Of a stretch of DNA of 64,000 nt, positions 46,561 to 52,267 are shown in pieces. The stretch is from Thalia democratica (taxonomy: Eukaryota). The number at the start of each line of letters is the position of its first letter. Positions within the stretch are counted from its first letter, which is position 1. Location: positions 55,428,001 to 55,492,000 of the forward strand of contig OZ241826.1 of assembly GCA_965202585.1 (NCBI GenBank), in the 5' to 3' direction. The translations under genes and the position numbers were made by a program. Below the pieces are notes generated by a model. The model was not told the DNA's origin, ran no database searches, and saw only the letters and a program-made list of their open reading frames with translations.

Positions 46561-46989
46561 GTCAACCTCCTAAATATCATTAGCTTAAACTTATATCATT
46601 AAAGGTATTAACTAAGGTATTACGACAACAACATTGAAATTTTTTTAGGTGTTCTAGTATTTTGCACTTAAAGTTTTAATGGGTGGTTTATAGTCTGTAG
46701 TGTTCAAATTAGCAGTTACGCAAGTGATTAAGTTGAATGTCTAGTTAAAAAAAGACGTTTGTATAAATAGTTATAATTATAAATATCAACTCTACTATAT
46801 ACTAGTTTTTATCTGTTAAAAAAACATCTAATAATTATTTAAATGTACGTCGTCAAACTTTTAGGGACAATGCAATTTAAAATGCTTAGTTTTTTTATTT
46901 TTAAAACTTATGAATCTATACAAAAAAATTATTGAAAATATAACGTAAACAAACTTATACAATAAGATATAGAAGACAAAATCTTAATA

Positions 46990-47030
46990 AAACTAAACAT
47001 ATTTCGAGCAGTTCTCATCAGTAGAGTACA
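46990..47030 (-). ncRNA. Minimal hammerhead-like motif in the 3' repeat of the host PLE
   Basis: The reverse complement reads CTA CTGATGA GAACTGCTC GAAA TATGTT TAG. The core is intact, but stem II is 2 bp and stem I only 3 bp. Confidence 0.5.
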
Positions 47031-47449
47031 AAGCTAACAAGAGATAAGACTTACAAACTTATACAGTAACCAAGTTATCAAAAGAGTAATAAGACAAAAA
47101 CAATTAGTAAAAATTAAAATAATTTAAGTTTACTTACATTATAATTAACCTACAGTAAATCTATACATTAATATAATGACACTAACACGTCTTATAAAAT
47201 ACTACGAAAATAAAGAAACAGTATATTCAAATTCTTTTTGCTGACATAAAACCGGTTTTCTTAATAAAAAAAATAGCTTCTAGTTTAATCAAATCGAAAA
47301 CGTTGCTACAAGTTTTAATGAATTAAAATCTATTTAGTCTATTTAGATTTTAACTGTTTGCACATGTTGAATTATTAACAAAATTTTCTGCAGTGGATGA
47401 ACGTTTAGATGCATTTGAAACTTTGACCAGTATATCATATTTCTTATAT

Positions 47450-49116
47450 TATTTATTTATTAAAAAGAAAACAATTAAATTATTTAATGATATTGGCTTC
47501 AAAATAACTATCGACGTTGGCACAACCGTATGTAATTTCTTAGATATAACTTTAAACCTGACCAACAATATTTATAAACCATACCGCAAAGAAAATTCAG
47601 AAGTAAGATATATAAATAACAAATCAAATCACCCTAAAGTTATAAAAAGAAACCTCCCAGCGATGATTGAGAGGAGAATTAATAAACTTTTCAAAAATGA
47701 ACAAATATTTAACAACCACGTAGCAACATACCAAAATGCTTTAAACAATGCCAACTTTAAACATAAGCTAAAATATACAGAAAATGTAAAGACCCAAACT
47801 AAAAAGAAAACAAACCGATCAAGGAAAATCATTTACTTTAACCCCCCGTTCTGCCAATCCGTAAAAACTAACATCGGCAAAGCATTTTTCGAGATAACTA
47901 ATAAACACTGCAAGCAAAACGAAACATTAAATAAAATATTAAACAGAAATAACTGTAAACTATCTTACAGCTGTATGAGCAATATTAAGGTAATAATACA
48001 AAAACATAACAAGAAAACTCTAAATAAAACCAGCAAAACCGAAGAACAAAACGTCACCACCAATAACCCATCCTGCAACTGCCGATCGAAAAACTCATGC
48101 CCCTTGGATAACAATTGTTTAATAAAAAATGTAATTTACAAAGCTACGATAACATCTCCGAAGGAAATAAAATATTATATCGGGTCGACCGGAAACACTT
48201 TTAAAAACAGATGGTACAACCACAACAACAGTTTCAAAAATTATAAAGATAACGGGACCGAACTAGCAAAATACATTTGGCATTTGAAACATAAAAAAAT
48301 CACCTACGACATAAAATGGAGCATCCTCCACCACATTGGGGAAATTAAAAGCATACATAGCATCTGCAAAACCTGTATTTTAGAAAAATAGAAATAGCCA
48401 ATGCTAAGAAAAAAGTCAACTTAAATAAGAGGTACGAACTATTTGCAAACTGTCCACATTTCCAAAAGCTCTGCTTTAAAACTTAAACTAACACCCGCTG
48501 ATTAGTAAGTTAAATTATTTGTAATTGTAAAGAGTTTTTATCGCCCATGTAAAAATTGTTTCCTTTTTTATTTACACCAAAGCACGATACCAAATTAAAA
48601 CTTTTGATTACACAATCTTTATTCAATAAGGAAATTTAACAAAAATTTTCTAACTTTGCAACTAAAGTATATTAATTCAAATTGTGCGCCAATATAGTTA
48701 CGTCATAAACCTAACTTTAAAATTTTTATCTTTAAGTTTAAACAGTCAATTTATAGCATTATCAATTGCAAATGTTGTGTTTAGTATCCTATTTGTTTTT
48801 TCTGGCAACTAACTTCAATGTGAGTCATGTTTTACTATTTTAAGGTATATAGCACTATATTTTTTTGTCTATCATACCAACAAAGTTCTTAAAAGCGTAA
48901 CATAAACTAAAAAAATTTTTTACTTAAGTTTAGTATATTTAAGATTTATTTTTGCTCTTAAACCATTAGTTTTTAGTTTTTATTTTTGCTTCACTTCCAT
49001 TTATTTTGTTCAAAAAATTTTTTCAGACCTATTTACAACAACTGAGGATCTCCTATATGCAAGTATAGGAGTGAAACATTGTTTTGATTGTAATAAACTG
49101 TTGAAATAAATATTGG
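47450..49116 (+). mobile_element. 5'-truncated Penelope-like element of a second family (RT C-terminus/thumb plus GIY-YIG endonuclease)
   Basis: About 310 open codons: NFLDITL, SNHPKVI, RKIIYFNPPF, CNCRSKNSCPLDNNCL, NVIYKATI, YYIGSTGNTFKNRWYNH, TELAKYIWHLK. One frameshift near 48390, after which LNKRYELFANCPH continues. Flanked by a 13-bp direct repeat atatttcttatat (47437-47449, 49117-49129). Confidence 0.92.
49033..49093 (+). ncRNA. Type I hammerhead ribozyme (PLE-associated, short palindromic stem III)
   Basis: Core CTGAGGA (49042-49048). 8-bp stem II CTCCTATA/TATAGGAG. GAAAC (49073-49077). Stem III ACATTGT. GUU triplet (49081-49083). Stem I TTACAACAA/TTGATTGTAA, 9 bp with one bulged A. 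Confidence 0.8.
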
Positions 49117-50539
49117 ATATTTCTTATATAAAAGACAAAAATTCTCTACACTCTATGGTACATACTCTTTTATCCTTTTCCTTATATGTCTTGTTGTTAA
49201 TCCGATATAGCTTGCTTTACAACAGTAGCTCAATTGGTAAACTACCATGCTTTTATTTAAGTTGGATATTAGATCTTTACCACCTAGTGTTAATAGTGGT
49301 TTTGACGTTAAGACAATCCTTGGGTTTGCTGCATAATTAGTTTTTCTTATCAATTGTCCTATTTACTTTTCTAACATTTTTAAACTTTTATCGATGAATT
49401 GGATTTTCAAAGTAACTACACATTTTCAGGTCCTAATGTCTTTCTTTTATCCAAATTTTTAAAGTGTAAATAAATTGCTTTGTTATCTAACACTTGTGGG
49501 TACCTATTTTTGTTTATTAGTAACTTGATCTGTTTGATTTTTATTAGTAGAAACTCTGGGGAACACATTTTATGCGCACGATGACACAGAGTTCTGATTA
49601 GATTCATTTTTCTCTTTAAACTACAGTTTGATTGAAAACTCAAATAACAACCTGTAAAGGTTTTCTTTCTAAAACCCATGTTAAAAATCTCTTTTATTCT
49701 CGTTTAACTTAAACATCTAAAAAAGAAAGTTTATTACTGTTTTCTTTTTCCATTGTGAAACTGATAGAGTTATGAAAATTATTAAAAATATTGAAAAAAT
49801 CATCTATAGTATTCTCGTTTCTGACAAACACAAAACAATCATTAACATACCTGAGGTACAATAATTCATTTTTGAAAGCAGGAATAATTTCTAACTCGAT
49901 ATAATCCATAAATATGTTAGCCAATGTTGGTCCCAAGGGGAATCCCATGGCTATCCCGTCTTGTGAGGAATAAATAAAAGAACTTAAACTAATCTTAACG
50001 CCAGAAGTTGCAAGTCGCAATAGTTTTTTTTAATTAATTCTGTTTATTGTAGGTTTTCGTATCCTATACAATATATCAATACAAACTTCAATGACCCCTT
50101 CATGAGGTACATTAGTAAACAGACTTTTAAAGCCAAACGACGCAATAACCGTATTATTTGCTTCCTTATTTTGTCAACGAACGTAAAGGAATCTTTTAAA
50201 CAATATGCTGAAAAGTGTTTTAACACTGGTTCAAGACTCAGGTTTAAAAACTTCGTCAATTTATACTGCGCTGACTTTACTATATTTAAATTGGGCCTCA
50301 ATTGAATATTTTCTTTAGGAATCCTTTGATGAATCAAAATTTTAACTTTTTGGCTGGGCAAAAGAATTTGACAATATTAATAAAGTTGAAAGTGAAATTA
50401 TTAAGTTTCTGATACAATCATTATTCAAGATTGAAATTAGTGAATATCTGTTTAATTTAGTTAAACCGTATGGGTCAGTTACCCAACATTTGTAAAGGTT
50501 AACGAAAAAATCATATCGAAAACATTTTTTTAAGTTTTA

Positions 50540-51215
50540 TTTTATCTATGGTAAACTCAGCGCAGCATAAATTGGCGAAGTTTTTAAATCTAAGTTTGTT
50601 CCCCAGAGTTTCTATTAAGTGAAATCAAACAGATCGAAACCTATTATTAGATAAAGTTGCTATTAAACAAAAATAGGTACCCATTAGAGTTAGTTAACAA
50701 AACAATTTATTTACACTTGAAAAATTCGGATAAAAGAAAGACATTAGGACCTGAAAAATGTGTAGTTACTTTGAAAATCCAATTCATTATAAAAAGTTTA
50801 GAAATGTTAGAAAAGTAAATAGGACAATTGATAAGAAATACTTATTACTTGCAGCAAACCCAAGGATTGCATTCAAATCAAAACCGCTATTTGTATTTTA
50901 TCAAGAAAACCTGTTTTTGTAAGCAAAAAGATTTTGATTATACTGTTTCTTTATTTTCGCCGTATTTTATAAGGCGTGTTAGTGTCATTGTATTAATGTA
51001 CAGTTTTACTGTATGTTAATTATAATGTAAGTAAACTTAAATTATTTTTATTGTTACTAATTGTTTTTGTCTTCTATTGCTATTTTGATTACTTGGTTAC
51101 TGTATAAGTTTGTAAAATCTTATCATTGTTAGCTTTGTACTCTACTGATGAGAACTGCTCGAAATATGTTTAGTTTTATTGAATTTGTGTACCTTTTATA
51201 TCTTGTTGTATAATT
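50540..51215 (+). mobile_element. Inverted, doubly internally deleted copy of the host PLE including its 3' repeat
   Basis: MVNSAQHKLAKFLNLSL is joined directly to CSPEFLL, and later AANPRI..SKPL is joined to KK..CKQKDFDYTVSLFS. 50880-51215 is an inverted repeat of 46950-47300. Confidence 0.8.
51135..51175 (+). ncRNA. Minimal hammerhead-like motif (mirror copy of 46990-47030)
   Basis: CTGATGA at 51145-51151 and GAAA at 51161-51164. The core is identical to the minus-strand copy. Confidence 0.5.
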
Positions 51216-52267
51216 ACTGATCAGTTATCTTCCAATATTTGAAAAATACAGTATTTAAAAAACAAAAACACTTTAAATAAATAATAAACGGTATAGTATT
51301 TTTTTTACAAAACTTGTACAGTGCTTCGAACATTTTACAAAACTTAAGGAAAACTAGTTCAAAATAAAATCAAAGGTATTTATCGTCCATGTAAAGCCAA
51401 GAAAGTATCACGCATAGCAGGATATTTGGTCAATAATCCTAAGACCGCGTAACACTTTAAGTAACTTGTTTTCAATATTAATATTTTGCATTAAATCTTG
51501 TGGTTTTATAAACATACAAAAAGTTGAAACAAACTTAATAAAACATAAATTTTGCAAAAAAGTAGAGTTTTAATGTACTATTTTATTATTTGATCTAGCC
51601 GTACTTGTTGTAATAAAACTATACTTTCTTTTTATTTTAAACATGTATATGAACATGTAATTATTTATATTTGAGTATAAGATAAGTTTCAAAAACGCTT
51701 GACGTTGTTTTATTTTTTTTATCTGGAAAAAAATATTGACGTTAAGTGCGAGTTAAGCAAACTTATTCTATTTGAATTAGAATCTCATTTTGATTTTCCA
51801 TTCAGCAGTGAAACTTAGTAAATGTCTGAATTTGTGATAAATACTTTTCAACTTGTGTTGTTATCAAAAAATGTAAAACGGTTATATATTCTCTTTGCTT
51901 GGACTACTACAGTTACTATTGAAACTTTCTGCTTTAATGTTGTTAAAAGTATGAATATTTTGGTTTTAATTTTAGAATAACATTAGTCCTTAAATTACTT
52001 CTTTAATTACGTACTACTGAAGACAAAAATAACTTCCACCGTGCATTGTTAGCAAACTTATACAAACAAGATAATTTAATAGAATACTAAAACAAAAAAG
52101 GTATTTTAACAATTTACTTTTAGCAGCCCGTTTTAGTAAAACTAATAGTCCAACAAATTTTTATTTTTGCCATTTAAAAATTAATCATAAATACCTGCTT
52201 TTAATGAATTGGAACTTTACAAAACCAATAGAAAAGTAGTACAGTACAAAGATTAATGCTAAAAAAC

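Follow-up and report, generated by a model that had tools for sequence, protein, structure and literature searches.

Probable nested insertion of a Hydra-clade Penelope-like element, with a 13-bp target-site duplication, into the endonuclease region of an older Penelope-like element in Thalia democratica

Positions 46930–51215 of a 64,000-nucleotide stretch of Thalia democratica DNA (GenBank assembly GCA_965202585.1, contig OZ241826.1, positions 55,428,001 to 55,492,000; the whole stretch is here called the window) contain sequences of two families of Penelope-like elements (PLEs). One, the host, is interrupted within its GIY-YIG endonuclease region by a plus-strand fragment of the other, the insert, and this fragment is bracketed by two copies of a 13-mer. 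An earlier interpretation made from the letters alone (the sequence-only reading) had recognised here the nesting of one PLE within another from a separate family, and this is borne out. We are highly confident that the locus represents a young, 5′-truncated PLE of the Hydra clade nested in the endonuclease region of an older Penelope/Poseidon-type PLE with a 13-bp target-site duplication (TSD), and that, with TSDs of mostly 13–15 bp being normal in the insert family, the nesting itself is ordinary.

The 13-mer, ATATTTCTTATAT, is found at positions 47437–47449 (left copy) and 49117–49129 (right copy). The two copies are exact and there is no third in the window. When up to one mismatch is allowed, the observed count is matched by none of 100 shuffled sequences. 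The span between the copies is 1667 bp (47450–49116), which consists of 8 unmatched nt (47450–47457) and 1659 nt of family sequence (47458–49116). Taking out the insert together with one 13-mer rejoins the host sequence. The same was seen with natural uninterrupted paralogs as the reference: each host flank was searched separately against the genome, and on uninterrupted host-family copies the two flanks match adjacent positions, with an overlap of 11–13 nt. An alignment of 19 such empty-site copies shows one homolog of the 13-mer in each, with contiguous flanks; the 13-bp repeat is thus a genuine TSD. Furthermore, both window 13-mers carry the same two private differences from the host-family majority (ATATAAGAAATAT versus the majority AGATAAGAAAGAT, in the host sense), as is predicted for duplication of this particular site. 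On the window plus strand, the majority sequence equivalent to 47437–47440 is ATCT and the left repeat has ATAT. A second host copy in the window (copy B, below) could not be used as an empty-site control because it does not have the insertion site.

The insertion point is located between the YIG..R..EH half and the AEH..E..N half of the host endonuclease region. The peptide strings on which the sequence-only reading relied are present: YIGLTTRHIRKRIKEY upstream, CNCRSKNSCPL...VIY...YIG in the insert, and LEAI and KPVLCQQKEF downstream, the last two as read by eye from the minus strand and absent from the one frame translated there.

At the 5′ junction of the insert is an 8-nt filler, TATTTATT (47450–47457, plus strand), which displays no likeness to the host or to other insert copies. 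Other insert copies read ..CACTAGAAAA ahead of TATTAAAAAG, i.e. they have shared upstream sequence where the window copy has the filler, and no genome match to the insert query reaches into its first 8 positions. Contigs from public sequencing runs have a loose end at 47458, in agreement with the filler boundary. Because other copies extend upstream with shared sequence, the window insert is truncated at 47458; it comprises unit positions 1240–2903 of a family of 2903 bp.

The coding remnant of the insert (47458–48391, plus strand) comprises the reverse transcriptase (RT) thumb, the linker and most of the GIY-YIG endonuclease, and has a 98% identity to residues 217–526 of the L002 open reading frame (ORF). 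The CxCX5C linker, CNCRSKNSC, is at 48074–48100, VIY at 48131–48139 and YIG at 48176–48184, all on the plus strand. A TAG codon at 48389–48391 (plus strand) ends the endonuclease frame, and the remainder of the endonuclease, IEIANAKKKVNLNKRYELFANCPH.. (IEIAN..CPH..), is found in another frame at 48388–48486 (plus strand). The window copy is frameshifted at the A run at 48384–48388 when compared with copies that have a continuous frame: L002, L006, L007, L009 and others display an unbroken CKTCILEKIEIAN..CPHFQKLCFKT sequence, and one metagenome contig has one extra A after 48383. The 332-aa ORF listed from position 47393 begins in host antisense sequence and continues across TSD and filler before it enters the element; the initial ~22 codons do not belong to the element. 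The 3′ untranslated region (UTR) and pseudo-long terminal repeat (pLTR) occupy 48487–49116 (plus strand), terminate in ..AAATAAATATTGG and hold a hairpin within a hammerhead-like core. The window copy is dead and unable to act autonomously, since the first 1.2 kb is missing and the endonuclease frame stops at 48389–48391.

The insert family has at least 60 matches of 91–99% identity in the 802-Mb genome. The best 30 matches have the same 3′ base as the window copy, except that one stops 2 nt earlier and another carries an internal 3′ deletion. The 5′ ends are scattered, from query position 9 to position 330 and further in. The unit length was taken from three tandem units (L003–L005) and is 2903 bp, i.e. 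less than 3 kb. This array (G000 C1:84596745–84607213) has at least three complete 2903-bp units with 99.9–100% identity; its coding region is split into a 185-aa frame and a 500-aa frame. The family architecture comprises the 2903-bp tandem unit, a tail of ~70 nt and head-to-head composites.

The RT of the insert family displays the motifs FDIVNFYPSI and YRDDG and the thumb sequence FLD..L...YRK....Y....SNHP, of which the window copy keeps the thumb only. The match to Pfam RVT_1 is weak (E-value = 2.7e-4, below the Pfam cut-off). A search gave 1260 homologs of ~700 aa, and an alignment was made with 27 of these (28 sequences in the alignment). L006 has the sequences RLRWKLFF (the RWK motif) and FADKTRNLY (DKT in place of DKG), and the R, the W and the D-K-T are nearly invariant in the 28 homologs. 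Positions C422, C424, C430, C519, C522, E525, N539, C548 and H550 are invariant. The GIY-YIG stretch VIYKATITSPKEIKYYIG contains no Cys, with CKTC..E and N..CPH downstream of it, and the invariant residues of the endonuclease are Y, YIG, R, H, E and N.

Pfam analysis of the endonuclease pieces of both insert and host gave no GIY-YIG match, and a fold comparison was therefore used for the insert. An AlphaFold model of the insert-family endonuclease (predicted local distance difference test score, pLDDT, 85) aligns with the I-TevI catalytic domain with a Z-score of 10.0 and a root-mean-square deviation of 2.2 over 89 of 92 residues; the Z-scores with T4 EndoII and UvrC are 8.3 and 6.5. A profile search against PDB sequences gave nothing relevant. 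The model indicates that the insert family carries a GIY-YIG endonuclease fold at its C-terminal end.

The Hydra clade of C-terminal endonuclease-bearing (EN+) PLEs is characterized by RWK, DKT, the CxCX5C motif, absence of Cys between GIY and YIG, CxxC..E, N..CxH and a length below 3 kb (Craig et al. 2021, PMC8557442 section 11). The insert family has all of these: a unit of 2903 bp, RWK, DKT instead of DKG, the CxCX5C linker, a GIY-YIG stretch that does not have the CCHH cysteines, and the CxxC and CxH motifs, which respectively precede the catalytic E and follow the N. Further features in common with that clade are a single RT-endonuclease coding region (in the examined copies a stop codon or frameshift splits it), partial tandem arrangements, inverted copies joined head-to-head and a tail on one of the ends. 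By its motifs and modelled fold the insert would therefore be a Hydra-clade C-terminal EN+ PLE. There are however several differences. The published Hydra families are nearly all found in (TA)n, the tail is ~70 nt in the insert family versus 30–40 in published families, TSDs of the insert family are readable and mostly 13–15 bp, and Rfam detects no canonical hammerhead in the insert, where a core could only be drawn by hand, its stem II having a U-U at the base.

Copies of the host family are 80–86% identical, versus the 91–99% of the insert family. Host-family ORFs contain DKGNG (SDKGNGCV in L042 and L043), a YxDD RT motif and the sequence VIYQYSCCCKASYIGLTTRHLRKRIKEH..AEHL..LEAI..KPVLCKQ; the endonuclease motif string is VIYQYSCCCKASYIG..EH..AEH. 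Judged by motif, the host GIY-YIG domain has a CCHH finger, and the ~40 residues before it hold no Cys motif. The host fragment in the window matches Pfam RVT_1 (E-value = 3.2e-8), and homologs of the host RT show RVT_1 together with two further precomputed Pfam families, PF28514 and PF26215. Among the few named homologs of the host are a protein of Schistosoma and entries from metagenome bins that wrongly carry a bacterial label. Two close homologs of the host RT, P0161 and P0189, have the NCBI label 'MAG: reverse transcriptase ... [Bacteroidota bacterium]' and probably represent PLE fragments of animals that were wrongly binned with bacteria in metagenome-assembled genomes.

A GIY-YIG domain with CCHH and without a linker finger is the characteristic combination of Penelope/Poseidon (PMC8557442). 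As in Penelope/Poseidon PLEs (Arkhipova 2006; Pyatkov et al. 2004, both as cited in PMC8557442), the host displays DKG, the YxDD RT, a GIY-YIG domain with two Cys between GIY and YIG and downstream His residues (CCHH), no linker finger upstream, and a head-to-head inverted dimer with the tail on one arm. It differs in that the window host copy is heavily decayed, and its placement with respect to Neptune, Nematis and Perere is by motif only. The host would thus be an old family of the Penelope/Poseidon type. The statement of the sequence-only reading that the two endonucleases differ in architecture is correct: the insert has the CxCX5C linker finger, whereas the host has CCHH and no linker finger.

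The host region had also been described as one PLE with an insertion. The PLE and its insertion are confirmed, however 46930–51215 is not a single element but a head-to-head pair of a minus-strand copy (copy A) and a plus-strand copy (copy B). The two arms are 75–94% complementary, and the inverted-repeat arms I1, I5 and I6 pair 46955–47436 with 50891–51190. Copy A covers family positions ~859–2542, from ~50330–49117 and ~47449–46955. Its 3′ part (46955–47436, minus strand) is the left inverted-repeat arm; it corresponds to host reference positions ~2069–2542 with 78–80% identity and contains the C-terminal half of the endonuclease (..SSTAE..LEAI..KPVLCQQ) and the 3′ UTR/pLTR. Its 5′ part (49130–50330, minus strand; reference 859–2079) contains a 5′-truncated RT (YVNDC) and the N-terminal half of the endonuclease, VVYQLSYCCKASYIGLTTRHIRKRIKEY, with many stop codons and frameshifts. 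Copy B (~50327 to ~51240, plus strand) is head-to-head with A, begins at reference ~685 and has internal deletions at reference ~950–1650 (RT region) and ~1902–2214 (endonuclease core). At its 3′ end it extends ~27 nt or more beyond copy A, which represents the tail. A short microhomology, CTATT, marks the borders of the endonuclease-core deletion of copy B, the positions to compare in copy A being 49292 and ~47275. Flanks of the host dimer at 46929–46954 and 51240–51262 are loosely similar and too decayed for a TSD of the dimer to be called.

PLE pLTRs usually carry a hammerhead ribozyme. In the 3′ region of the insert, CUGAGGA (49042–49048), GAAA (49073–49076) and GUA (49090–49092) were recognized by eye. 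The candidate stem II is a hairpin of 8–9 bp at 49049/49050–49071 (8 bp with 49050–49057 paired to 49064–49071), and there is a U-U at its base. The thermodynamic minimum free energy fold of this region shows the hairpin at 49050–49071 as the only robust feature. Rfam searches of the window region and the full unit gave no hammerhead at E-values up to 10 and only sub-threshold matches at chance level (RT-6, AilA thermometer and others). The ribozyme, if real, would cut 24 nt upstream of the integrated 3′ end and would not define that end. There is an AATAAA at 49092–49097, ~19 nt ahead of the TTGG end, which might define the insert 3′ end instead. Both host arms (47005–47030, minus strand, and 51146–51170, plus strand) contain CTGATGAGAACTGCTCGAAAT, a possible minimal hammerhead core in the pLTR; it has no Rfam match.

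Twenty-two independent insertions of the insert family were delimited. Thirteen of these show a TSD of 10–15 bp, which measures 15 bp in four insertions, 14 bp in three, 13 bp in five and 10 bp in one. Thus the 13 bp of the window locus is typical of the family, and the sequence-only reading, which had called the locus a rare direct readout of the target site, is not supported in this, there being 12 further independent insertions with TSDs of 10–15 bp. Its statement that clean TSDs are not a regular feature of PLEs is likewise too strong, given the TSDs already published (PMC8557442, PMC3846280). As a control, the TSD finder was run on 462 mismatched pairs of left and right flanks; the maximum was 11 nt, and only 3 pairs gave 10 nt or more. 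L016 (C1284) and L017 (C1:60.7 Mb) display the identical insertion, TSD and flanks on a small contig and a chromosome-scale contig; they probably represent an unplaced haplotig or a duplicate contig and were counted once as one locus.

Two types of 3′ end are found, ..TATTGG (unit position 2903) or the same sequence followed by the ~70-nt tail, which corresponds to unit positions 1–~72. All copies in L001–L030 in which the 3′ end is present end at the TTGG point or run into the tail. Eight of the TSD-bearing insertions are head-to-head composites (L007, L012, L015, L017, L018, L025, L027 and L028) whose TSD flanks the whole composite. Both outer ends of a composite are 3′ ends, and in all eight one is a TATTGG end and the other a tailed end, which has a probability of ~0.002 if the ends are independent. 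Four composites have the tail on their longer arm and the other four on their shorter arm. A tail at only one end is often seen in PLEs (PMC8557442 Fig. 2 legend; PMC3846280). Because the TSD surrounds the whole composite, it is suggested that both nicked strands primed reverse transcription.

The 15 untailed ends are followed by ATAT in four cases, ATA in two and AT in two, ATAT being expected in ~2%; ATA is next to the end in 6 of 11 TSD sites that are TTGG-ended. Since the unit itself continues ATATAAAT past TTGG, priming probably uses a few nt of microhomology. The 13 TSD-bearing targets are AT-rich with a T skew. Once they are oriented by the TTGG end, the TSD is seen to be T-rich with a tendency to end in TAT, and on its 3′ side there is a purine followed by A at +5 (11 of 13) and +6 (10 of 13). 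The resulting loose pattern, T-rich..TAT|R..AA, may be a target preference and is suggestive only at n = 13. None of the 13 is a (TA)n microsatellite. We propose tentatively, and rate somewhat below an even chance, that the insert family, unlike the described (TA)n-targeting families, uses unique AT-rich sites with a near-fixed stagger of 13–15 nt and a loose target motif (a T-rich TSD ending in TAT, a purine and an A-run), and that its composites always have differing 3′ ends.

The history of the locus may be reconstructed as follows. An old Penelope/Poseidon-type PLE would have entered as a head-to-head inverted dimer, copy A in minus and copy B in plus orientation. Much later, target-primed reverse transcription would have placed a young 2.9-kb Hydra-clade PLE in the endonuclease region of copy A, oriented opposite to it. 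Its GIY-YIG endonuclease would nick the minus strand at the left edge of ATATTTCTTATAT, and the 3′-OH would prime cDNA synthesis where the RNA ends in ..UAUUGG(AUAU), with probable help from ATA(T) microhomology. Reverse transcription would halt at unit position 1240, resulting in the 5′ truncation. The plus strand would be nicked 13 nt off (9–13 nt if the ATAT is template-derived), the 5′ end would be joined with the 8 nt of filler, and fill-in would duplicate 13 bp. Of this account, the anatomy of the locus, the empty sites, the TSDs across the family, the clade motifs and the GIY-YIG fold are shown by the data, and the order of the nicks, the microhomology priming and the age are what we infer.

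A shorter cut stagger of 9–12 nt is an alternative that we regard as unlikely. Here ATAT, ATA or AT of the right repeat would have been copied from the RNA template, with the target also starting with ATAT. The RNA template does continue AUAUAAAU after UUGG, tandem and tailed copies have ATATAAATC after TTGG, so that the first 4 nt of the right repeat, ATAT, are also the bases that follow TTGG in those copies; the excess of ATAT, ATA and AT after untailed ends is far above that expected, and loose ends of contigs depart from the window only at 49120. However, the ATAT of the left repeat (47437–47440) is host sequence in host context and the target therefore held ATAT. Target and template are the same at ATAT, and the two cases are indistinguishable there. 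In addition, the 13–15 bp mode includes L017, L021 and L007, which have no such overlap. The 13-bp repeat of the sequence-only reading holds as a true TSD, and the stagger is 13 nt, or 9–13 nt if up to 4 nt of the right repeat are template-derived.

That the insert family prefers other PLEs as targets, a homing-like nesting which the sequence-only reading had raised, is very improbable. The only insert-family copy in the window does lie in the only other detectable PLE of the window (~4% of the 64 kb), and within an endonuclease-coding region. In none of the 21 other independent insertions, however, is the host family at the junction, and when ~60 kb of flanks were searched at the protein level with RT and endonuclease queries of both clades, only two weak PLE-like matches appeared. 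These are in 1.5-kb flanks: that of L026 is ~0.4 kb from the element, and that of L006 is ~0.9 kb from one end of a composite that extends past the locus at its other end. The 13 targets share only AT-richness and the loose pattern given above, and with about a thousand copies per family (first-look candidates: insert 1552, host 888–1680) a few chance nests are expected. The target site is not special.

An assembly artefact, in which repeats were mis-joined at a shared short word, can be dismissed as scarcely credible, for although both elements are high-copy repeats and no listed contig spans a junction, a mis-join would not lead back into the very same host copy, precisely at the neighbouring base, and leave a 13-bp duplication that bears private variants of that copy, the same structure is found at 12 other loci on different chromosomes, and the window is deep within a contig of more than 95 Mb.

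Several points weigh against an ordinary nested Hydra-clade insertion as described here. Neither insert nor host shows the Rfam hammerhead that is usual in pLTRs. Nine of the 22 insertions have no TSD of 10 bp or more, thus the TSD is frequent and not universal in the family. The exact nick positions are ambiguous by up to 4 nt. The assignment to clade rests on motifs and fold and not on an RT phylogeny with references. Logan contigs over the repeats are ~50–170 nt, and among the listed pieces none spans 47449/47450 or 49116/49117; the empty-site joint of 47449 to 49130 is also not found among them.

PLE TSDs and the nesting of one PLE in another have already been published, and the kind of event is known. 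The spacing of nicks by the PLE endonuclease is variable and gives TSDs of variable length, according to the introduction of PMC8557442 (citing Pyatkov et al. 2004), and Penelope elements of Adineta vaga have TSDs of 8–10 bp (PMC3846280). The closest precedent is Pen2a_Av, which lies inside Pen3 of A. vaga, inverted relative to it and flanked by a 9-bp TSD, the proof coming from an allele in which the site is empty (Arkhipova et al. 2013, PMC3846280). The window locus resembles it in being a secondary insertion in another Penelope family, in the orientation, the short TSD and the empty-site logic. It differs in that Pen2a_Av and Pen3 are of one clade and the insert there is full-length with pLTRs and a 9-bp TSD, whereas here the clades differ and the insert is a 5′-truncated simple copy with a TSD of 13 bp.

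As a single locus the nest therefore carries little weight, since nested retrotransposons with TSDs are routine and a Penelope-in-Penelope with a TSD is published. The value is at the level of the family, which has readable TSDs of mostly 13–15 bp, two alternative 3′ termini and composites whose termini always differ. PLE integration is poorly understood, and targeting of microsatellites hides the TSD in most clades. A genome-wide catalogue could constrain nick spacing, target preference and the origin of the tail. If the family-level pattern is true genome-wide, it would give clean natural data for the cleavage geometry and two-strand priming of the PLE GIY-YIG endonuclease, for which there is no in vitro system yet; such a system is named as the next task for PLE integration (PMC8557442).

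Sequences of the insert family also occur in several marine metagenomes and in runs from three organisms. In record 7 of run X1, a marine-metagenome contig of depth 3 matches the host sequence on the right of the insertion (49124–49236) with one mismatch and at 49124 enters 38 nt that are neither insert nor empty-site sequence. Run X16 has exact matches to the unique host stretches at 47275–47370 and 49172–49372, which suggests that it is from the same species or sample as the assembly.

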